Source: Antechinus flavipes (taxonomy: Eukaryota). Taken from it: a stretch of 64,000 bases of DNA. Made by a program: the position numbers and the translations under genes. The stretch lies in assembly GCF_016432865.1 (NCBI RefSeq), contig NC_067400.1:620001-684000 (forward strand). Reading direction: 5' to 3'. Under the pieces are notes generated by a model. The model was given only the letters and a program-made list of their open reading frames with translations. It was not told the DNA's origin and did not search any database. Positions 1-57,509 of the stretch are shown here, in pieces (the first letter of the stretch is position 1; every line of letters begins with the position of its first letter).

Positions 1-194
1 TCTTCCCACAGGGGCATGGTTCAGCCAAGTTTCCGCGGAATTCCTGGATGGGGAGAGCCCACCTACAAGAAGCTACCTCAGGCCGAGAGGCCACAGGCTG
101 CTTTCCTGGGTGTCAAATTGTATGTGTCTGCGTGCTAAAGCCTTGGGCAGGGAAGAAAGCTCTGGGCCCTGATTTCCAACAGGGCCTCCAACAG

Positions 195-348
195 TTCCTG
201 GCTGTGTGACCTTGGCCAGGTCACTTAACCTCGTCTGCCTCAGTTTTCCCATCTGCAAAATGAGCTGGAGAAGAAACGGCAAACCCCCTCAGTGTCTCTG
301 CCAGGAAAAACCCAAATCGGGTCACTGAGTCTGACACGACAGAAACAA
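195..348 (+). mobile_element. MAR1-type marsupial CORE-SINE (3' part)
   Basis: CORE ctgtgtgacc..cacttaacct..cctcagtttt..aaaatgagctggagaag plus RTE-derived tail ..gccaggaaaaaccc..gggtcac..gacacgac. Confidence 0.8.
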
Positions 349-541
349 TCCCTAACAGAGAGGGGTGGGAGACCAGACAAGAAGGGGCTCTGGAAGAGCT
401 TTTCATGCGGGACTCCCAGCCCATAGCACATTGCGCGCAGGCGCACTCCAGCTCGGGTAACGGCCTAGTTCCTACTAGTTGCCTAGCAACAAACCCCGCC
501 TGGCACTCTACCGCGCAGGCGCAGTCCGGCACCGCCGTTAC

Positions 542-952
542 CTGGTAGCGACTCAGGGCGGGACCCTCGCCTCCGCCTCCAACTACTCCTCCACCGCTGC
601 CTCCGCCTCCGCCTCCGCCCCCTCCTCCACCGCTCCCTCCGCCTCCGCCTCCACCGCTGCCTCCGCCTCCGACGCTGCTCCCGCCACCTCCGCTCCCGTC
701 GCTAGGGGCGGGACCTGGGCCGCGCAGGCGCACTGCCAAGAAAGCGCCGGCTGCACCATCCCACAGGAAGAGTTCAGCACCGATCCCAAAGAGAAGGTTC
801 CGAGTAAGGGTAGGTGGGTTTGGCTGCTCGGCACCTGGCGCAGGAGGGCTCTGGTCCCGCAGGCCCTCGCGTAGCCGCACGAACACAACGTGCTGGGGTA
901 ACCACAGCCGCCACTGCTCACCGTCTCCGCTGGCCTCCTCGGCCGCCGCCAT
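542..952 (-). CDS. NUP88: Nucleoporin NUP88, coding exon 1 (137 codons; rest of gene lies left of the window)
   Basis: [31 protein letters not shown]...[18 protein letters not shown]...RLRGP...PALSRYQ matches the recalled human NUP88 N-terminus. ATG at 952-950; phase-0 donor CAG|GTAACG at 542/541. Confidence 0.95.
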
Positions 953-1594
953 CTTTCCCCGCGGTGCCCTACTGAGTCCCGCCCCCCATGTTATCCAACC
1001 AGCGCTCGTCATCCTCTGCTCCAGCCTATGAGCGTCCGTTCGTGTGCTTGTCCAATCGGCGCTCTCTCCTCTCTGCCCAATCAGTGATCTCCTCTCTTCT
1101 GCCCAATCAGAATGGGAAGCGACCGAGGCGAAGTCACTGCCTAACACACCTTCTGGGTCGCTCACCAATCCGCAGCGTAGCTGGAAACTCTGACTTTGCT
1201 AGCTTCGCTATGGAGGCGTGGCCGCTCGGGTTGGCCCCTCCCCTCTCTGGGTAGCCGCTTCCCGGGTTTGCGGAACCTTCTCAGAACTGCAGTCAGCCAA
1301 GATCCCTGCGATGTTGCCCTTGTGGCTGGAGCGTGTTTGTGGAGCCAGGACAGGCAGATATGGAAGGAAGCCTTCACGCCTTTGGTTTCGGTGTCTCTCT
1401 GGATAGGACTCCGAGGGGGAGGGGGAAAGAGCGAAAAGGTTGCGGACTACCATTCCCAGCATGCACCGGATGCATTTACGCACGCGCAGTTCGTGATAGG
1501 GTTATCGTTCCCGGTATGAACGGTGGGGAGGGGGGCCAGGAGGCGAAAGCGGCGGATTCGGTCTCCCTACGGACTCCTAGGGAGCCGGGCTTTT

Positions 1595-1672
1595 ATGGAG
1601 GAGACGGTGCAGGGACGACGCGCGTTTCACAAGCGTCCTAGGGGCCCGGTCTGGAAAGAGACGTACCGGCAG
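1595..1672 (+). CDS. RPAIN: RPAIN exon 1 ([26 protein letters not shown])
   Basis: ATG 1595; donor CAG|GTCAGT. Confidence 0.88.
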
Positions 1673-4562
1673 GTCAGTCCTCGGTCGGGGTTCCTTGCCC
1701 TTCCAGTCAGGCCCCTTTCTCGCCCTCCCGAAGCTCTAGGCCCCGCCCCTTCCTGCCTCCTCTCCTTGGGACCACCCTGCACTTGTGCATTGTTGGTGGA
1801 GCTGTGGCGGGGTCTAAAACTGAGAAAACCATTGGGAGCGCTTCTAACCGAGAGTTCAGGACCTATTCAGACTGGCTTGGGTGAGGAGCGACCGTGGCTC
1901 CCTCTCCAGACTAACTAGGCGGTGGGCAAGGGCCAGGCCAGACTGTGTTTTAACAGGGTCTGCTTCTGAGGAGTAGAGAGGCTTTAGCCACCTTTGACTG
2001 TGATTCCCCATGTAGATCATTCCCTACCCAGTAGTCTGAGGGTTTTTCTAGAAACAAAGACCCGTGTTTAAAAATAAAAATAACCCAGAAATCAAAAAGA
2101 AATGAATGAAAAGCAGGGAAGCTTCCCCAGCATAATGTTTGCTTCCACTCATTTGCCAAACTGGAATTCCCTGTCCTGTCCTTCCGGTTCTTTTCTGACA
2201 AAATCTTGTCAGTTTGACTCTTGCTAACGTTCTCTTGAAATAACAGTAGCATTCAGAGCGTAGTAGGATACAAAAATCTTCCGTGAAAATCCCCCCATTT
2301 TGGATTGCCTTGGCTGTTCCATTCCCTCTTCGTTCGTCTTCCTCCTGGGCACCTCCAGGCCCGTAGAGTGGTTTGGGAACAGCAGATGCGCCATAGATGT
2401 AACATTTAGGAGTTTGCTTTCCCCTCCGAACGCCCCCCCCCTTTGGATCATGAAGTTAGGACTTTGTAAACATTTCCTACTCATTTAGTGCCTGAGGCAT
2501 GTAAGACTATAAAATAGGCACGCAAATCAAACATTTATTGGTAACAAATCCGTACTTTTACGACCCCCATCTTCAGTTTCACAACCACATATGGAGTCAT
2601 GATCCACAGTTTAAGAAGCTTTGATATAGTAGGTATTTAGGGTTCTTGGATAGGCCTTCTCTTCATTTCTTTCTTTTGTATTCCTTTTTCCTGCTTTTTT
2701 TCTTTTCTAGGTTTTTGACTCCACAGTTAGTTTGGTAATATCACTTGGTTAGCCCCACTTCCTTGCTGGTTTTTTATATATTTTTTCCACTCCCTTGTCT
2801 TATGTCTTTGGATTTAATCCAATTTTAGCTGGTTTGTTTTAAAAGAATTTAGTTCTCTATTTTTTCACCTTCTTTGGAGACTTTTATTTTTCCTATGCCT
2901 TCTTAAGTAAATATCTCTAAAGAACTCTTTTCTAGGAAGTTTTTCTCTGCTTCTTTCTCATTGTTTCCTTTCCCTTTCAATCTCAGTGTATTCTGAATTT
3001 TATTTTCTAAAGATGTTTTATCTTTATTATTCCTGTATTCTCCATGAGATTTAACTTTTGAAGTCCCTGGTTTGAGCTCTTCCTCCTCTCTAGGTTCTAT
3101 GTCTTGCTGCATCTCTCCTTCCCACCCCCATCCCATGCCTCCCTCTTACAAATTTCATTTCATGAAGGACAAACAAGTTACATGGAAGAAGCATTGTAAG
3201 GGAAGTGGTGCTCTCTGCCTCCTCCCCCATAGGCCAGGTCATCTTGCCCCTTTCCCCATAGTTACCTTTGATTCTCCCACTTTGGGGGTTCGGGTCACGG
3301 TCTGGCCACTACTTACTAATATTTTCATATTTCAAGCTCACCTCTCTCTCTCCCGCCAGCGATGCCTTCAGAGAATGAAAAGCAGCCGGGCCCAACTCCT
3401 GGACAAGTATCGCCGAGTGGGAGGGGTCCACTGTGGCCTTATGGCCCAGGAGGTGATGGAGACAGAGTGGCTGGCTCTGCAGTCCGTACATGAGAACCTA
3501 GCGGCCCAGAGGCGCAGCAACAGTTTTGCACAGGTCTGTTTCCCCGCATTGGTGAGTGAAAGGAATAAGGGGGTATCTCCCGTACTTCAGAAGATTTGGG
3601 CTGCCTTCCAGGGCTGAGGGCCTGGAGTCCAGGTGCCTTTCTTTGGGTCAGTGGGGAAAAGGCCAGTGCACCAGGGGCTGGGAAAAGGCTGTTCTGAGGC
3701 TCCTTCCCCCTGCTCCCTCCAGGGTGGAAGCCCCAAGAGCCGTAACCACCCGCTAGGCCACAGGTGGGGAGCTTTTGGAGAACAATACCAACCCACATGC
3801 TTCCTCTGCTCTGTAGGTAGCAGATCCCGAGGAACTTGAGGTTTTGGAAGAAATTCAGCAGGAGCTGATGAGTCAAGGTATGGAGGCATGGGGGGGAGGG
3901 GGAGAGAGGTAGAGGCGTGTTGGCTTTGGATGCTCAGCCTCACTGGGGATGGGCTAGTCACAGACCTGTTCCATGTGCCCGCAGCCCCCCTGTGCCTCAG
4001 TGTTTTCCGGACACCAGCCTAGGCAAATGAGCTTTGGGTCCTAGCACAGACCTGGCTGGTCAGTCTTAGGCAGATCCTTCCTCTCTGAGAATCTGTGACC
4101 AGACTCCCTGGAGTGATAAGTCTGGATTACAAATGAGGAAACTGAGTCTGGGGCTATAAGTCACCCCACATCCATGTGCTCCAGAGAGCTTATTGTCTGG
4201 GGGCAGAGCAGACTTAGTAACACTCTCCCACACGTGGGGACTTTTAAAAGCCCCTTCAGGTTCTTCATCTATAAAGTGGAGGTAACAAGTGGCTGCCATC
4301 CCATAGGACCGGTGAATGGCTCTCGGAGGTTCCATCCCAGTGTTAAGGATACAGGCATCCAGCGTTTGGCAAACTCTGATGCTTCATCTGTGCTCGTTCA
4401 CGTGTTCTAGGATTCCCTCCACAGCCCTTGGGCCAGCCAACTGTGGAATGGGGTGTGGCTTTGAGGAGCATCGTCCTTGGTACTCTCCTAACTGCCCTGT
4501 ATTTTTATGAATCTCCCTTTTCTGAGGGAAGAGGGGGAAAGAATACAGACACATACACACAC

Positions 4563-4615
<53 letters not shown>

Positions 4616-7600
4616 TCTCCCTCCCTCCCTCCCGTTCTGTGTGATGCTCATCTTCCATTCTTGCCTTGTGAACCTTTGAAAAAGCTCCAGTCAGCAAAAG
4701 GTGTGGGCAGTGTCTTAGTGGGATCCAGCCTGCTCTCTTCTTCAGCCCTAAACCCAGCTCACGGTCCCAGAAATGCATGTGATGTCCAGCCCAGCTCCAC
4801 AGGATGCTCTTCAAGGGTAGGATGAAACATTCCATAGGCATTCTTCCTGCATTTGGTCTTCCTTGTGTGGATGGGAAATCTCAACTCCTTCAAGCAATTC
4901 TGGATCTCTTCCAGGTTCTATAAAACCTTGGAGCGTCAGGCAACCCCCATAGGGCCGTCAGCAACCAGAAACATATCTGGATCCCCCTTAACCCTAGGGA
5001 AGCCATTCCTCTTTGACCCGGACTGAGAGCTGGATGGTGATAAGCACCTTTGGGGAGGTTCGCTTCCCCATTTTTGTGCCTCATGGTGGGGAGGGGTGTC
5101 AAGAGGCAGATTTGTTTCCTTGTTCCCTCTTCCAAGGAGATCTTGATGTGTGGCTGGGAGCACCGTGATACCAGAGCCCAGGTGAGCTTGTTTTCGCTCC
5201 ATCCCTCGGATCATTGTGAGACACAGAAGTCATCCATTTGGACCAGCGCCTTGCTGAAGCCTCTGACCCATACCTTCTGTCACTTGGCTCCAGATGACGC
5301 CTTTCCATGCTCCTTCCTGCCTCTCTTGTGAACAGATCTACTTCACATTGGGCGTGTCCTGCTGCAAGAATCTGCTCCGACACTCACCTTTGTCCCATTT
5401 GGGCATCGAAGAGCAAGTAGGGTCCCACAGCCCTGGATGCAGAAAGCAGGGTTTTCTCCATCTTCTCCTTTGCTTTCTGTGCTTGAGATCCTATGGGATG
5501 ACCTTGCTAAACCGCTTCACAAGCTGACACTCCTCACAGTCCCCAATTGATGTGTCAAAGGAGAGGAACAAGCTGTTCTTGAGAGAAGCGATCCATACTT
5601 TGAGCAGCCACATGAAGAAATCTCCCCACTCACTCAGAGATGTAAATGAAAACAAGTTGGAGGTCCTGACAGTAAAGGAGAATGGCTAATGCTGACATTG
5701 TGGGGAAACAGGCTTACACACACACATACTCTCAAAGATACAGAAATGAGCAGAATCAGGATAAATAGCCTTTGGCATTCTGATTGATGCAATGCTCAGC
5801 CAGGCTCCAGAGGATCCGGAATCCAGCAACTCTCGCCCTGCTCAAGATGTAGGATATGATCTGACCGTGGGGTACGAGAGGAGGATTTGCGGGCACCGTA
5901 TCCCCCTAAGGTGTTCCAATAAGTTTCTGTCCGGTTCAGTTTGCCAGAAGCACTCTGGGCTTTTTTCCTCAGTTCTGGGTGAGGTCACTAGCTGCTGACA
6001 TCCACGGTTCAGGTTTTGAAGGACTTGCCCGGGACTGGTCCTTTGGGATATTCTCATTTGGGCTTTTGGTGTTTGCTGTGTGGCCTTCCTAGTTTCATCC
6101 CGTTTTCTCAAAGTCTACGTACTCGTTAGCAGTGACGCCTCTGGTTTTGGTGTGGAATGTCCTGATTGAGACAAATGCCTCGGGCCGGGGACCTTGGGAA
6201 GAGTTTCTGCTGTGGTTTCCTCTCTTTCCAGGTCTGGGCCAGCAGCTCAGTGCAGGATTAGGGTTAGGGTTATACTCACAAGTCAGTCTGAAGGGTGAGG
6301 GCCCCTTTCTCACTTTCGCCAGATGTCCCTGGGCTGCCTCTCTGCTTACAGCTTCTCCTTGAGAGGAGAGCAAGGATATGAGCCTAGAGGGGCCGATATT
6401 GGCTTGCTCATGCAGCAATATTAGGGTTTTGTTTTTAACCAAACTCGCTGTCAGACCAGGAAAGTCCCTTTCCCCAGTGCAGATCACCTTGTCCAAAGCA
6501 CAGAACCGGACTTGTTGTGACTTCTGCCTTCTCCAGCTAGCCAGCATGTTTCAGATGCCAAATGAATCTCTGTGCTGCACTTCTGCTTGGCTTAGGGCCT
6601 CCAGGTCAGCATGATCTGTCTCTCCTTTGAGAAGCCCCTGGACTGCCTTTAAAGGCTGCCCTTACCTTTTCCCTTTTATCCCTTCACACAGTCTTCTGAA
6701 CTGACTGTTCTCCTGCTCCTTCTGCCTCACCGTTAGAATTGTTCCACTTCCCGGTTCTAGTTGTCCTCGTCCTCCCCATCCCATTCCCTCCTGCCCCCCA
6801 GGATGAGACAGCCTCCTTTACTCCCAGCTGCCTTGTCAAATCAAACTTTTTACCTGTACATCCCTACTGGGATCCCCACAAATCAGTGAGGCAAGAACAC
6901 TGGCCAAGGTTCCTGGCCCTGCTTGTTGTGTCAGGAACATTTCAGTGGGATGCCCACCTAGGAACAGTCTCATTCTATACAAACTTCCCGTACAGTTAGA
7001 GATGTGATCCACTTTATTTTCCATTAGAGTGCCATTCCTTGAGACTTTCTCTACATTCCCATGGCCTAGTACAGAGCCCAGTATTAACTAATCACTGTTC
7101 TTGGTGATGGCAACAGCCATTCTCTTGGAAAGAACTCAATTACAGGAAAGTTTCAGACCAGCAAAATACTATAAGAACGTTCTATCATGTTATTTATGAC
7201 AGAAGAATAAGGTTCTACAGCAAGAACTAGCTGGCTTCAGCGCCTGGCAGAAAACCTAAAAAACCAAGTTGTTTTAGTGCCGAATGCCAAATGCAGCTAA
7301 TTAGTTGAGCTTGATTGTTTTTAACATTTCAGTTGTCTCCAAAATAATAATTTCCCAGTCCCCATCTCTCCTGGGATACTCTGACTTGTTGTTCTCATTA
7401 GCTTCTCCTAAACAGTCTTTGTTAGTGTCGATTTTGTTCTGATTCTGTTTTCTCCTTAAAATGACCCAGGTTATTTTTATATTTCCCCCTTTTGTAGATC
7501 TTATTTACATTACTATGTGAATATAGTGTCTTGTACTTTAATCACTCTATGTAGTTCTGCCATGGCTGGGCGTATCCCCGCCGTGGAGTTACTGGGTCCA

Positions 7601-8839
7601 GAAGCACCGGGTTCTCTCCAGCACGGCTCTGCGCCCTGTGCCTGCTTGGCCACAGCCCCAGTGGCATTTTGCGCTTCTCAGAGCCCCTTGCAGCTCCCCT
7701 AACCATCAGTACAGAAAGCTTTCTATGCCCAGGATGGTGTCAGAGCTTTTCCTTCCCTTGCAGAACAAGCCTTCATTGAGGAGTATGAGAGGGGCCTGCA
7801 GTTTGATGACACTTGTCTCTGGGCTCTGCTGGAGGGGCTTCAGGCGGACGGGGTCATCTGCCCCGTGTGTTCCAGGTAAGAGCTTGTGGAAAGGGGGGGC
7901 GGAACCGGCAGGCCTGGGCCTGGCCCTTAAGCGGCTGCATGGTTTCTGAGAGTGGCTCTGCTTCTAGGCACAATCTGAGCGTGGTGAGAGGCAGGGTCCT
8001 GTGTCAATGTGGTCTCCACCTCTTCTCCCAGGTGAGCCCCTCCCTCCTAGTCACTAGTGAGGGCTGGAGAGATTGTGTGTCAGTACTGAGAAGTCCCCCC
8101 TCCCCCACCACAAGGGAGCCCAAGCCTAGGTGTGGGGAGCAGGCTGTGGGAGGCCCACGGGAGGGAGGGATGGCTTCCTTGACCACTTCCTCCCTCCTCA
8201 GTCTCCAGAACTGACAGAGCAGACCTTCCGAGCCCTCTTAGAGGAAAGCGTGAACAGACACAGCGAGACATGTGCCCACAGGCCCGAGTTTTCTGTCACC
8301 AGTGGAACAGAAGAAAGTGCCAGTCTTCTTTTGAGCTGTGCGGTACGGCCCTAACCCTAAATGTGCCTTCTGGAGAGCCCTCTGACCCTGAACCCTTCGC
8401 TGTCAGACTTCACTAGTCAGACACTGTCTAACCTGAAGGGAAGCAAGGCTAAGACAGTTCCTAGGCCTAGAGCTGGAGTTTGTAGTGGACCACCAGCTGA
8501 CCCACAGCAGAGGATCCTGACACCCCAAGGATGACAAATTCTGAGTGTCAGGGCTCCAGGTTGAGGCTGGAGCTGTGGCTGGTTTGGGGGTTAAAAGGCT
8601 GCCCAGTGAGGTAATGAGGTTCCTCCCCCCAGAAGAGGACCCCAAATCAAGGAGGCTTCTTAGAGCCAGGCAGCACCCCTGGAGCTTGGGGACAATCTGG
8701 CTCCACAAAAATGCTGATCAGGCAGGTGGGGTGGGCTCCCCCTCCCCCCCAGTCTAGGACCAGGGCTAGCCCCAGGCCCCTTTAACCCCAGATTCTTCTC
8801 CATGGACAGGTCTGCGATACTCTGACCGTGCTGCTCTGA
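1595..8839 (+). CDS. RPAIN: RPA-interacting protein, whole model join(1595-1672,3360-3533,3817-3877,7764-7875,7968-8031,8202-8342,8810-8839) = 660 nt, 219 aa
   Basis: All introns GT-AG and the frame stays open. Motifs [32 protein letters not shown] and the C-terminal Zn-finger residues CPVC..CQC..H..C..SC.VCD match RPAIN. Confidence 0.93.
2620..3110 (-). mobile_element. T-rich degenerate LINE (probably L1, antisense) in RPAIN intron 1
   Basis: strong T-rich strand asymmetry, AT-rich relative to flanks; no clear ORF homology. Confidence 0.35.
3360..3533 (+). CDS. RPAIN: RPAIN exon 2 ([10 protein letters not shown]...SNSFAQ)
   Basis: pyrimidine tract + CCAG acceptor; donor CAG|GTCTGT. Confidence 0.92.
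3817..3877 (+). CDS. RPAIN: RPAIN exon 3 ([20 protein letters not shown])
   Basis: TGTAG acceptor; 61 nt keeps frame; donor AAG|GTATGG. Confidence 0.9.
4566..4633. repeat. (CT)n microsatellite grading into (CCCT)n
   Basis: seen directly. Confidence 0.95.
6860..7150 (+). mobile_element. Old L1 3'-region fragment in RPAIN intron 3
   Basis: atttcagtgggatgcccac resembles marsupial L1 3' sequence; heavily diverged. Confidence 0.35.
7764..7875 (+). CDS. RPAIN: RPAIN exon 4 ([15 protein letters not shown]...CPVCS)
   Basis: TTGCAG acceptor; donor CAG|GTAAGA; 112 nt. Confidence 0.93.
7968..8031 (+). CDS. RPAIN: RPAIN exon 5 ([21 protein letters not shown])
   Basis: TTCTAG acceptor; donor CAG|GTGAGC; 64 nt. 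Confidence 0.92.
8202..8342 (+). CDS. RPAIN: RPAIN exon 6 ([10 protein letters not shown]...LLLSCA)
   Basis: CCTCAG acceptor; donor GCG|GTACGG; 141 nt. Confidence 0.92.
8810..8839 (+). CDS. RPAIN: RPAIN exon 7 coding part (VCDTLTVLL*)
   Basis: GACAG acceptor; TGA 8837-8839; AATAAA at 9008-9013. Confidence 0.88.
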   Translation, partial: VCDTLTVLL

Positions 8840-9114
8840 CTGCCTTTCTCCCGAGTCAAGGGTCACTGTTCTGTGGACAATGCTGCTTATTCCTAGGTGT
8901 GGGGAGGGAGCCGAGGAGCCGGGCTGATGCCGCACAGGAGGGGGGGTCCAAGTGGTTTTATTTCTCATTTTGTGGGATGATGTACAAAAATGCCAGCAGA
9001 GCAAGGAAATAAAAGTGGGTTAGGAAACATAATTTATGTCTGACAGTATTTTACCAAACTTTCTCCATGATAGCTTTGGGTAAGTGTTCTCTCTGGGTCC
9101 AAAGTAGGGTCTCC

Positions 9115-9387
9115 CTACTGACACTTGACAAACCCTTTCAGATCTTCCAGGAAGTTGATGTATTCCTGGTGTTCTAAAGCTGTGCTGAGCTCAATCAGTT
9201 CATCCGCAAATGTATTGTCCACCCCTCGGTCAGCCAGGAAGTCCATCAAGTGGTCGTACAGGGCCCAGTCCAGGGAGTCTGTGTTCAGTGTGTAGTTTGT
9301 GTCTTTCCAGTCCGATTCGCTGGTGGGCTGAAAGCTAACTTCCCGGATAGAGAAAATGTCACTCTCCTCTTCCTCTTCCTGTCCAAC
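9115..9387 (-). CDS. C1QBP: C1QBP terminal exon (equivalent to human exons 5+6 fused)
   Basis: VGQEEEEESDIFSIREVSFQ...DSLDWALYDHL...KGFVKCQ*; 273 nt uninterrupted; TAG at 9117-9115; AATAAA (-) at 8957-8962. Confidence 0.95.
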   Translation of the reverse strand, partial: VGQEEEEESDIFSIREVSFQPTSESDWKDTNYTLNTDSLDWALYDHLMDFLADRGVDNTFADELIELSTALEHQEYINFLEDLKGFVKCQ

Positions 9388-12299
9388 CTAACGTTTGCAG
9401 AAGAGAACGAGACCTGAGCCGGCAATTCACTGACCTCTGAACCTTGCCTTCCCCACCATGACACAGGGCCAGTGTTGCTGGCCGGCCCTTGGTAACTGCA
9501 GCGTTTCCCCTCCCACCCAAGAACCAGCAAAGGTGCCCGCGGGCAACCCTTCCCTGGCCACTACCTCATCCTCGGGATAGTGGCAGTCCAACACGAGGGC
9601 CTTCTGGGTATCGTTCTTCACGACTTCCACCACAAAGTTCGGGGTTGATGTAAGTTCAGACTGCACCCAACGAAAAGACAACCAAGGTTTTAGAGAGCGA
9701 GAGCCCGGTCCCTCCAAAACAGAATTCCAATAGGGCTCCCCATCTCCTGCCCACACCTTGGGCCCCAGGAAGTACGCTCCCCTGGACTGGGGCTCAGCCG
9801 CCTCCAGGAAGCCCATTGATGCTCCAGAAGCTGGGGGCCTCTTTTCCCAACTAAGCTGCATGGCTCGATTTAAGGGAGCTCCCAGCCCATTTCTGCCCAG
9901 CTCAGGTTGAGCTCACCTCTTGCTCTTCTTGGCCTTTCTGCCCCTCTGATGGTTCATCATCAAATGTGGGCGGGATACTGTTGTTAATGTTGAAGGTGAC
10001 TGTGATCCTGGAGCAGGAAAAGGAAACCAAGGGAGTGGGGGCAAGGTCAGAAGGGGCGCCACTGCGTGAGGGGCCTCTAAGGCCCCCCTCAACTCACACC
10101 CCCAGAGCTGGCGCACTTCTACGAGTCCCTCTTTGGCCACTTTTCTCCGTAACTCCCCTCAGAGACACCTCTAGAGAACCATCTGAGGACCAGCAAAGTC
10201 CCAGCCCCTCCCTGGTCCCCAGAAGCCCAACTCACTTCTCGCCAGCTAATTTCCGGGTCAGCTTGGCTTCTGTGCCTTGCACAGCCAGTTCCCAATCTCC
10301 CGACATCTTGGGGAGGGATTTGTGCTTCTGGATCTTCCTCTCCTCTTTGATCTCATCTGTCAGGAATTCGGCAAAGGCCTTGTCCCCTGAAACATCGAGA
10401 CGGGGCACGCTCCTGTCAGAACTCTCTCATAGGCCTGGGGAGTGGGGGGCTAGATGCAGAGAAAGGGCGCTCCCCCAACCTTGCCTTAAACACTCACCCA
10501 GGGGCCGAGACAACTCTACAATAACAGCACGGATGCCTGCCTCCCGGGTCCCCTCCCCATCTAGCACAGGGGCCTGGGTTCCCTCTCCCCAGCAGCTGTG
10601 AAGATGAATCAGGAGGGACCTAAGGCAGCTACCCCAACCAGGATCAAGTGGCAAACGAGAAACGGTTCCCCAAATAATTCCTTCCTGATCCAAACACTCG
10701 ATCGGGGCCAAGATGAAAAAGTCCCTGGGCTGGAGGAGCGTCCCATGAAATGAGGGCACTCAGAGGGACATAGGTGCAAGGCATCTGTTTTGGAGTGATG
10801 GGGGCAGAGGGAGGACTCTTTGGGAGGGGAGGGAGCAGTGGCCTCCAAGGCAGACAGTGAAAGGAATTGTAGGAAAACGGACTGAAGTCAGGCCTTTTCT
10901 TCAATCTGGGTCCAGTGCACATAGAGGGGAGCTGCAAAGACCTGGATTTTGGCAATCCATATTGCAGGCCAAAAGGATTTCTTTCTCAGGACTTCTGCTC
11001 TGTGGGTGCCAGGGGACACAGCCAGTTTTTCTTTTTATCGTTAACACTGAGGACTGCGATTTGTCCCCCACTCTGTCTCTTTTTGTGCATCTTGCTCTCT
11101 GGACCAGGACCATTATTGGCTTTTTTCCCCATGTGACTCATTTCCTTTGAGTCCCAGTTTGGGGAGGGGAGGCATTTATAAAGTCATCCACAGCACGGGG
11201 AAGGGAGTGGGGGAGGGGGAGCTGGTGCCCTCATTTAAGAGAGGAGGAAAGCCAGACTTTGGTAGGTCAGGGGGCCCAGCCCTGACTAATACAGGGGTGC
11301 CCCGGGCAAATCTCCCTACGTACCTGGAGAGGGGCCCCTAAGGAACAGGCGGTCCGCTGTGGGGCACATAGGTGTTTAAGAAAGGCTTCTTCCTCCCTCC
11401 CTCCCCCTTGGATTACCCCATGACGGGGTCCGCCTTCCAGAAAGGTGTTCCTCTGTCGGGGGGATGGGAGAGGGGCGGGAGTCTTTATCATTTTTCTTAT
11501 TCAGTGTGAATCCCTGGTTTTAAATTAACCCAGGACGCTAAAAGGGCAAAATCTCACATAGTACACTGAAATCACGGATTCCTTATCTCTCTTTCACTCA
11601 CACACGTACGCACGCGCGGTCACAGACGGAACTTATGAACAGTGTAACAAAACAAACTAGGAACCAAAACAATGTATCAGGGCTCGAGATTCACAGAGGA
11701 AATAGAGATTCACTCTCGATCCCCAGGAGGGGTTTCCCCAACATTTCACTTCCAGAGTCCATTAAGAAAGGGGCTCAGTCTCCTTTCTGTCCTCTTCATG
11801 CCGCCCCCCAATTCCAAAGGCAGAGGGACAATGAGGAAAACCCTGGGGGCAGACCGCCCTCTCTGTCTGAGGGTCACTCGGCCCAGTGCTTCGGGTCAGA
11901 AAAACCCGAAATAGCCAAGTCTCAGAAGCCAGCCGAGTCCGATGCGAATAGACTCGGATAGGCAAGAGGGGGAGGGGATAAACAGCGGGAAGCGCCGAGA
12001 ACGCCCGCGGAGCTGGAGCTGCAACTGGAGGGGGCGGGGCCACGTGCGTCCTCTCTGGGTTCCCTCTTCCCCTACGCCCCGGTCGCACGCTTACCTTCGG
12101 TGTGGAGCCCGCCGCACGTGCACGAGCAGAGGCCGGGCGCGCGACGCAGCGGCTGCAGGAGGCTGGGACGCACGGGTCCCGGCTGGCCGTGGATTCCTCC
12201 ACCCAAAAGGCCTCCGAAGGCGCGGGTGGCGGTGGTCACGGCGGGGCGCAGGGCCCGGGCCGCGGGGCGCAGCAGTAGGGGTAGCAGCAGCGGGGCCAT
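9115..12299 (-). CDS. C1QBP: Complement C1q-binding protein / mitochondrial p32, whole model complement join(12095-12299,10236-10386,9917-10007,9565-9660,9115-9387) = 816 nt, 271 aa
   Basis: Presequence ending CSCTCGG|LHTEGDKAFAEFL, then ITVTFNINNSIPP, TSTPNFVVEV, YTLNTDSLDWALYDHLMDFLADRGVDNTF (MAM33/p32 family). All introns GT-AG. Confidence 0.96.
9565..9660 (-). CDS. C1QBP: C1QBP exon 4
   Basis: SELTSTPNFVVEVVKNDTQKALVLDCHYPEDE; donor GAG|GTAGTG. Confidence 0.95.
9917..10007 (-). CDS. C1QBP: C1QBP exon 3
   Basis: ITVTFNINNSIPPTFDDEPSEGQKGQEEQE; donor GAG|GTGAGC. Confidence 0.95.
10236..10386 (-). CDS. C1QBP: C1QBP exon 2
   Basis: DKAFAEFLTDEIKEERKIQKHK...; 151 nt; donor AA|GTGAGT. Confidence 0.95.
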
Positions 12300-13100
12300 G
12301 ACCGAGACACGCGGAGGGGGTGGGAGCGACGATGAAGACCGGAAAGACAGCGGAGGGCGCGAGGTACTTTGGGAAATATCCGGGCCGGAAGGGCACGAGG
12401 TCGCCCCGCCTCGGAACTTCCTGCGTCCTCTCGGAGGGTCATAGCGCCCTGCGCTTGCGCGGAAAGGCCCCGCGCGATGATTGGACGTTACCAATGAAGT
12501 CACTTCCGGCTCTAAAAACGGGGATTTCCTGGAGTTCCCCAGAGTGCGGAGAAGCTGAGGGGGTTTCCCCGGTTTTCCCGGAACCCCGCGCAGTCCCGCG
12601 TGCGCAAAGCTGACCGTGCTTCCCCCGCCCGTTTTCTGGTACCGCTTCTGGGGTGCTTTTCTGCATCAGACCCCTTTCCTTTCCGAGCTCCCCCTTGCTG
12701 GGCTCTGCCCTGGACCGCGAGCGCCGGGTTACATTGTGTCCAAGCTGCGCGTAGCCGGCTTCGCGCTGCTTGGAGGTTACTTTGTATCCCAGTCTTTCCC
12801 CAGCCCGAGGTTACTTTGTATCCCCCCGAGGTTACGCTGTATCCTCCTGCCCCGGGGCACGCAGTTCGGGAGGAGATGCCTTGTTACTCGCGCTTGTGAG
12901 CTCTGCAATTTTGAGACCTACACGCGCGCCCCCACGGGATTGGACGCGTCCCTCCGGCCCTGTGCGCGGCGGTGCCCTGTCACCCGCGATGATCTGTGCA
13001 GGGGCGGAAACCCCCTGCCCACCTGCGGGGAGACGGGCGTCGGGCTCGCCGCAGGTGGCCAGACCAGTTTCCGCGGCGGTCGATTTGTGACGGTTTTTTG
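11940..13100. promoter_or_regulatory. CpG island / C1QBP promoter
   Basis: CpG-dense; E2F-like GCGCGGAAA 12457-12465, CCAAT 12491, ETS ACTTCCGG 12502-12509. Confidence 0.75.
12095..12299 (-). CDS. C1QBP: C1QBP exon 1 (mitochondrial presequence, MAPLLLPLLLRP...LHTE)
   Basis: ATG 12299; donor G|GTAAGC. Confidence 0.9.
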
Positions 13101-13296
13101 TTCTTTTGCTCTCACAGTAAGGAAGGGAAGGGAGGTGGGAGGGAGAGAATTTGGATGTAAAAATACAATTCAATTTGAAAAAGAAATTGGACATGACTCC
13201 CAACGAGCTCGTTGTATAAAAGTAACTACAAGAAATAGAAAAATTGAGGAGAAAGTTGGATAAATGTGTATGTATACTCACATACAGATAGTGAAG

Positions 13297-13436
13297 TTTT
13301 CTTGGCAAAGATACCGGAATGTTTGCCATTAACTTCTCTAGCTCATTTAACAGATGAGGAAACTGAGGTAGATGAGGGTCACACATCTAGTGTCTGAGGC
13401 CAGATACTTCTAATCCACCGTGGCCCTTAGCTGCCC
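13297..13436 (-). mobile_element. MAR1-type SINE
   Basis: ttttcttggcaaagatac..tttgccatt..ttctctagctcattt..agatgaggaaactgagg..tagctgccc. Confidence 0.8.
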
Positions 13437-57276: not shown

Positions 57277-57509
57277 NNNNNNNNNNNNNNNNNNNNNNNN
57301 NNNNNNNNNNNNNNNNNNNNNNNNNNNNNNNNNNNNNNNNNNNNNNNNNNNNNNNNNNNNNNNNNNNNNNNNNNNNNNNNNNNNNNNNNNNNNNNNNNNN
57401 NNNNNNNNNNNNNNNNNNNNNNNNNNNNNNNNNNNNNNNNNNNNNNNNNNNNNNNNNNNNNNNNNNNNNNNNNNNNNNNNNNNNNNNNNNNNNNNNNNNN
57501 NNNNNNNNN
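57277..57509. other. Assembly gap (233 N)
   Basis: run of n. Confidence 1.

Follow-up and report, generated by a model that had tools for sequence, protein, structure and literature searches.

Gene structure at the C1QBP locus of Antechinus flavipes

Does the C1QBP gene of A. flavipes really lack the last intron carried by its relatives and, if so, is this absence fixed in the lineage, still segregating in the population, or a product of the assembly? The question arises from a stretch of 64,000 nucleotides of contig NC_067400.1 (the window, to which all positions below refer), in which C1QBP (p32/gC1qR/HABP1) lies complete on the minus strand, from 12299 to 9115, with five coding exons separated by GT-AG introns. 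Exon 1 (12095-12299) opens with the ATG at 12299-12297, encodes the mitochondrial presequence and is followed by a donor GT at 12094. Exon 2 (10236-10386), exon 3 (9917-10007) and exon 4 (9565-9660) come next on the same strand. After them lies intron 4 (9388-9564), of 177 nt with GT..AG ends, which can be aligned to intron 4 of the Tasmanian devil and the dunnart. The terminal exon (9115-9387, minus strand) measures 273 nt including the TAG, the sum of 123 nt from ancestral exon 5 and 150 nt, stop codon counted, from ancestral exon 6.

The exons were searched and compared singly. Each exon translation was 100% identical to the 271-aa A. flavipes RefSeq protein XP_051847438.1 (P0293 in our set), the first four exons matching it in 68 of 68, 49 of 49, 30 of 30 and 32 of 32 residues, respectively. 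The translation of the terminal exon is open throughout, from VGQEEEEESD through DSLDWALYDH to KCQ and the stop codon, and this exon alone contains the C-terminal half of PF02330 (MAM33), found with an E-value of 1.4e-18 and 68.1 bits against a gathering cut-off of 21.9. Its identity to the C1QBP orthologs of marsupials and platypus compared is 83-100%. From 8115 to 13299 the window is base-for-base the same as CM028219.1 of GCA_016432865.2. Far from the gene, positions 57277-57509 consist of 233 N, representing either a gap or masking.

We also considered whether the window locus could be a retrocopy. Introns 1 to 4 of the Antechinus gene measure 1708, 228, 256 and 177 nt, matching those of the devil (1597, 227, 258 and 175 nt), and intron 5 alone differs. 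RPAIN lies tail-to-tail with C1QBP, about 280 nt past the stop codon, an arrangement common to devil, dunnart, Petaurus, Monodelphis, Macrotis and platypus. Therefore, the four kept introns and the RPAIN synteny identify this as the syntenic C1QBP gene and rule out a retrocopy, as the original prediction had argued.

Downstream of the stop codon, an AATAAA poly(A) signal is present at 8957-8962 on the minus strand, which would place the lost intron about 300 nt from the 3' end of the mRNA. The 3'UTR also contains an element at 8983-9076 whose summed contig depth is about 2.3 to 7 times that of neighbouring bins, depending on the run; it is multi-copy in all four runs and breaks up short-read contigs.

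Intron 5 and its exact absence from the reference

The original prediction started from the reading GAC TGG GCC CTG (D-W-A-L) on the minus strand, which is indeed uninterrupted at 9270-9259, inside the open exon 9387-9115. It had also stated that in the human gene an intron separates 123 from 150 coding nucleotides between W and A, a split that proved right. We asked whether other mammals have an intron at this site (9264-9265, minus strand), and all five species read proved to have one, the exon dividing right after TGG with a phase 0, GT..AG intron of 167 bp in the Tasmanian devil (L001), 193 bp in the fat-tailed dunnart (L003), 626 bp in koala (L009), 183 bp in mouse (L006) and 122 bp in platypus (L005). 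The spliced form is represented by a devil mRNA contig (L002), with a 3'UTR of about 178 nt. In the terminal-exon search, many ORF fragments of other vertebrates likewise begin or stop at W41/A42, reading DSLDW and then VS, or Q and then ALYDH. The literature describes six exons in mouse C1QBP and an assay on the human exon 5-6 junction (PMC5828189, PMC8135049). An error in the human structure assumed is thus ruled out by the W/A intron of mouse and four other species together with this literature. Judged from the gene structures compared, the W/A intron is ancestral to mammals.

When the window was aligned with devil and dunnart, intron 4 upstream and the 3'UTR downstream proved to be conserved, while the gap between them corresponds to intron 5 exactly, in agreement with the scarless fusion that had been proposed. 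The flanking exons have neither gained nor lost bases, and all 90 residues of the terminal exon are identical to those of devil and dunnart. The assembly therefore presents five coding exons versus six elsewhere, with an unchanged C1QBP protein. At the junction, the intron ends share a 2-nt GG microhomology (TGG|GT ... AG|GC). Intron 5 itself is short, GC-rich (0.62-0.63) and homopolymer-bearing, the devil having a run of 16 C at intron position +63. Our search of the literature found no report of C1QBP intron loss, and in the available portions of the PMC3652778 supplement C1qbp appears in pseudogene and ortholog tables only.

Short-read contigs across the junction

We looked for sequencing runs containing window 8500-10500 by shared words, and the contigs of X18, X19, X20 and X1 were compared with the window over 8600-12400. 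The highest shares of window words were those of X17 (0.90) and X18 (0.89), both from organism H in study P7, followed by X19 (organism I, also study P7; 0.70), X20-X22 (organism J, study P8; 0.59-0.64) and X1 (organism A, study P1; 0.25). X18 is 99.8% identical to the window and belongs to the same species. The short reads published with the genome come from two A. flavipes males of one site, "AdamAnt" (the reference) and "Ant2"; the same paper also has data for A. arktos, A. argentus and Murexia and uses earlier A. stuartii data (PMC9290055). X18 may derive from either the reference animal or Ant2, and the word shares of X17 and X18, considered as a pointer to the reference animal, are not decisive.

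In X18, record 14 (368 nt) covers 9040-9265 with 0 differences and then continues into 142 letters that do not fit the window, and record 15 (4144 nt) covers 9264-12400 with 5 differences in 3137 nt and carries 57 extra letters past 9264. The same split at 9264/9265 was found in X20, another organism from another study (183 and 53 extra letters), and in X1, which is about 4% diverged (172 and 88 extra letters). Read on the gene strand, the X1 overhang aligns with the dunnart and devil intron from position 2 to 30, at the cost of 1-2 mismatches and a single 1-nt gap. The 2 nt shared by adjoining contig pieces, 9264-9265, are the GG microhomology, and the exon 6 contig of X19 stops exactly at 9265, forming a fork. 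Among the contigs listed for X18, X19, X20 and X1, none of high identity bridges 9264/9265, bearing in mind that contigs can drop minor variants. A query with an ORF made of devil intron and exon 6 gave 69 hits; the 13 of them that were read were all of bird/reptile or fish type, with no dasyurid fragment.

The contig depths are single-copy, so that the extra sequence does not come from a second, paralogous locus. We also tried contig depth as a test of heterozygosity, comparing exon 6 plus intron (20.7) with about 24.5 in X18, and set it aside as too noisy, since the ratio ranges from 0.63 to 0.92 in other runs.

The intron-less state was therefore not reproduced in independent DNA of the same species or of relatives, where X18, X20 and X1 all carry extra sequence. 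In substance, these three contig sets show an intron at 9264/9265, the observation that the original prediction had counted against itself, and its proposal of a clean phylogenetic marker falls, as X18, X20 and X1 run into extra sequence at the junction and X19 forks there. The intron-less state is limited to the reference haplotype or to the assembly; at most, the reference animal has a private or polymorphic allele, and otherwise the loss is an assembly artefact. Taken together, we hold with high confidence that this is the true C1QBP locus and that intron 5, ancestral in mammals, is exactly absent from the reference haplotype and yet persists in A. flavipes DNA and in that of relatives, the absence being unfixed and no marker of a lineage.

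Retrocopies of C1QBP and recurrence of the exon 5-6 fusion

Spliced copies of C1QBP turned up in the relatives' data. Contigs of X19 join the exons across introns 1-4 (9385/9563, 9660/9917, 10006/10235 and 10385/12094) at about half of genomic depth (6-9 versus about 15), and the contig of exon 6 and 3'UTR has double depth, with the organism's own alleles at 9102 and 9193. These junctions probably represent a very young processed retrocopy, possibly heterozygous, and the alleles at 9102 and 9193 point to a young retrocopy and not to carry-over of A. flavipes cDNA.

Further copies were observed in other organisms. In X20, a second C1QBP copy of full depth links 9216 in exon 6 to 10341 in exon 2, and X1 contains an intron-less copy, 87% identical, that covers 9111-9300. 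Trichosurus possesses an intact intron-less "C1QBP-like" retrogene (P0170; 279 aa, gene span 840 bp), and extra "C1QBP-like" genes are annotated in marsupials (P0170, P0291, P0298 and P0301, in Trichosurus, Petaurus and Macrotis). The gene spans are 840 bp in Trichosurus, 6224 bp in Petaurus, 2856 bp in Monodelphis and 4634 bp in Macrotis. Monodelphis also has an annotated isoform X2 (P0001, XP_056664065.1) that omits exon 4, 32 codons in frame. Four C1QBP processed pseudogenes are recorded in human and at least one in mouse (PMC5828189; PMC3652778 supplement). C1QBP mRNA is plainly a frequent substrate of reverse transcription.

The marker had also been described as near homoplasy-free. One of the ORFs retrieved (P0005) extends from an intron-4-like acceptor through fused exons 5 and 6, on a contig of 963 nt with a coverage of 2.5 (L010; ENA ERZ14208518, NODE_25431). 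Aligned with mouse, this contig comprises intron 2 and exon 3, then exon 4, intron 4 and exon 5, then exon 6 and the 3'UTR; thus, introns 3 and 5 are missing (exons 3+4 and 5+6 are fused) and the frames are open. The sequence is rodent-like, the closest stored protein being that of Neotoma (94%). Either some rodent has truly lost both introns, or the contig is a de Bruijn chimera of gene and retrocopy, assembled at low coverage. The fusion of exons 5 and 6 in this contig, even allowing that it may be chimeric, makes homoplasy possible and weakens the claim.

A possible young segregating allele

How, then, did the intron-less sequence of the reference originate? We put at only a little below an even chance that a genuine intron-minus allele of very recent origin exists in the reference animal, the intron being kept by a second animal from the same locality and by three related organisms. 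The fuller reading, that the assembled haplotype is such an allele, still segregating in A. flavipes and made from a cDNA template, is one that we hold tentatively, a shade less firmly than the former. Overall, we lean slightly towards a real cDNA-made allele over a polishing or assembly artefact.

In the mechanism that we propose, spliced C1QBP mRNA would have been reverse-transcribed in the germline by LINE-1 reverse transcriptase. Homologous repair or gene conversion would then have copied the 3'-anchored cDNA so formed, or a fresh retrocopy, into the chromosomal gene, over a tract that would start inside exon 5 and end in exon 6 or the 3'UTR, spanning at most about 450 nt. Such an event would remove just the 3'-most intron, at about 170-200 nt also the shortest of them, and leave intron 4 and the coding sequence untouched.

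Several observations speak for a real allele. The excision is exact, keeps the frame and has orthologous sequence on both flanks. The reverse-transcriptase model expects loss of a short, 3'-most intron from a broadly expressed gene that spawns retrocopies (PMC3652778), and the case of C1QBP intron 5 fits these expectations. A supply of cDNA is moreover active in the genus, as the spliced joints of X19 and the intron-less copies of X20 and X1 attest. The assembly was built from about 100x PacBio data of genomic testis DNA (PMC9290055), and PacBio reads cannot easily yield a base-exact intron deletion where no spliced template is involved.

Over 3.8 kb, the window and the X18 contigs also disagree at about 11 sites. 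Four of these (8782, 8953, 10753 and 11206) are transitions, with T or A in the window against C or G in three or all four of the runs. As transitions fit natural SNPs and not PacBio errors, the assembled haplotype looks real and distinct, and X18 represents a different one, which does not contradict that of the window. At 8782 (T in the window) and 10753 (A), all four runs, including the same-species one, have C and G, respectively; these two alleles are either derived and private to the assembled haplotype or residual errors.

Against a real allele, X18, the sole same-species run compared, has the intron and none of its listed contigs bridges the junction, and in three data sets the graph of short reads is interrupted within the intron, after extensions of 53-88 nt. 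Moreover, segregating precise losses are rare: mammalian loss rates give a rough expectation of 0.1-0.2 per haplotype genome-wide. On this expectation, a real segregating loss is rare but not absurd.

Alternative explanations

Nearly as likely is an artefact, in which the reference animal is intron-plus on both chromosomes and the local reassembly of Pilon (its "break fix") closed an intron tract that short reads could not cross by means of reads joining exon 5 to exon 6. These reads would stem from a young C1QBP retrocopy absent from the assembly or from trace carry-over of cDNA. Pilon would attempt local reassembly at such coverage breaks. That short-read coverage does fail here is seen in the contigs of X18, X20 and X1, which end 53-88 nt into the intron, the devil run of 16 C lying at +63. 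The procedure is also in keeping with this reading: the assembly was made by wtdbg2 from canu-corrected PacBio CLR reads and polished by Pilon with 100-bp BGISEQ reads (PMC9290055). In addition, X18 has extra sequence exactly at 9264/9265, unbridged among its listed contigs, even if it may come from the second animal; the best-holding runs retain just 0.89-0.90 of the window words; and X19, a DNA run of the same study, contains spliced C1QBP junctions. When reads from DNA span exon-exon junctions, this is a known sign of retrocopies as opposed to deleted introns (PMC3554589, PMC3663115).

On the other hand, this explanation requires spliced reads in the libraries of the reference animal, and X18 shows none of the spliced joints at introns 1-4. 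Had a retrocopy been assembled, its reads would map to that copy. The equally short introns 2-4 (177-256 nt) were left untouched. As for cDNA carry-over, the double-depth exon 6 contig of X19 has its own alleles at 9102 and 9193, which marks a real retrocopy and not A. flavipes cDNA.

A real allele could also have arisen by another route, microhomology-mediated end joining of a break within the intron, using the GG shared by its two ends (TGG|GT, AG|GC), a route that has been proposed for precise intron loss (PMC3652778) and that we consider improbable here. The 2-nt GG gives three equivalent deletion registers, the contig pieces overlap by just 9264-9265, and the intron is short, GC-rich and homopolymer-bearing. 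Nevertheless, a 2-base microhomology of this kind is the consensus of nearly any pair of splice sites, hundreds of other 2-nt pairs in an intron of 170-200 nt would have given inexact products, and the abundance of retrocopies and the 3'-most position better fit the cDNA route.

Finally, a clean clade marker, with the loss fixed in Antechinus or in Phascogalinae, would suit a reference that lacks the intron beside devil and dunnart, the two other dasyurid branches examined, that have it. This reading is very improbable: X18, X20 and X1 enter extra sequence from both exons and X19 forks, and the intron thus seen within the species and in relatives excludes a loss fixed at species or genus level.

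Comparison with known cases of intron loss

Coming back to the cDNA-made allele that we slightly favour, precise intron losses in mammalian housekeeping genes were reportedly described by Coulombe-Huntington and Majewski in 2007 and attributed to an mRNA-mediated model. Such losses have been discussed under the reverse-transcriptase or mRNA-mediated model by Zhu and Niu in 2013 as well (PMC3652778). The C1QBP case resembles them in being exact and frame-preserving, in affecting a short, 3'-most intron of a broadly expressed gene with processed pseudogenes, and in leaving the other introns in place. Those losses are fixed between species, whereas the C1QBP intron persists within the same species, so that its absence is either unfixed or unreal.

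A second comparison is with retroCNVs, whose junction reads mimic intron deletions in mapping-based analyses (PMC3554589, PMC3663115, PMC8017666). Similar exon-exon junctions of C1QBP occur in the DNA of the relatives X19, X20 and X1. In contrast to a retroCNV, C1QBP in the window keeps introns 1-4, the promoter side and the synteny with RPAIN.

If the allele is real, the Samford Valley population would have both alleles, as in the intron presence-absence polymorphisms of Drosophila, Daphnia and fungi (PMC4202315, PMC3488318). These are known in invertebrates and fungi, while the putative C1QBP case is mammalian, and we found no documented intron presence/absence polymorphism of a mammal in the literature searched.

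Significance

Whether the allele is real or an artefact, the absence of C1QBP intron 5 is unusable as a clade marker. If it is an artefact, it serves as a warning that exact "losses" can arise in an assembly of long reads polished with short reads, where junction reads of a retrocopy meet a coverage gap. If it is real, it would be a rare intron presence/absence polymorphism in a mammal, and a precise, cDNA-templated loss would have been caught segregating in a wild species whose genus is visibly making new C1QBP retrocopies. Mechanisms of intron loss have been argued almost wholly from old, fixed events, while in a segregating case the conversion tract can be measured and the donor searched for. 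A true intron-minus allele in A. flavipes would allow the reverse-transcriptase model to be tested at the level of the population, by means of tract length, linked variants and allele frequency.
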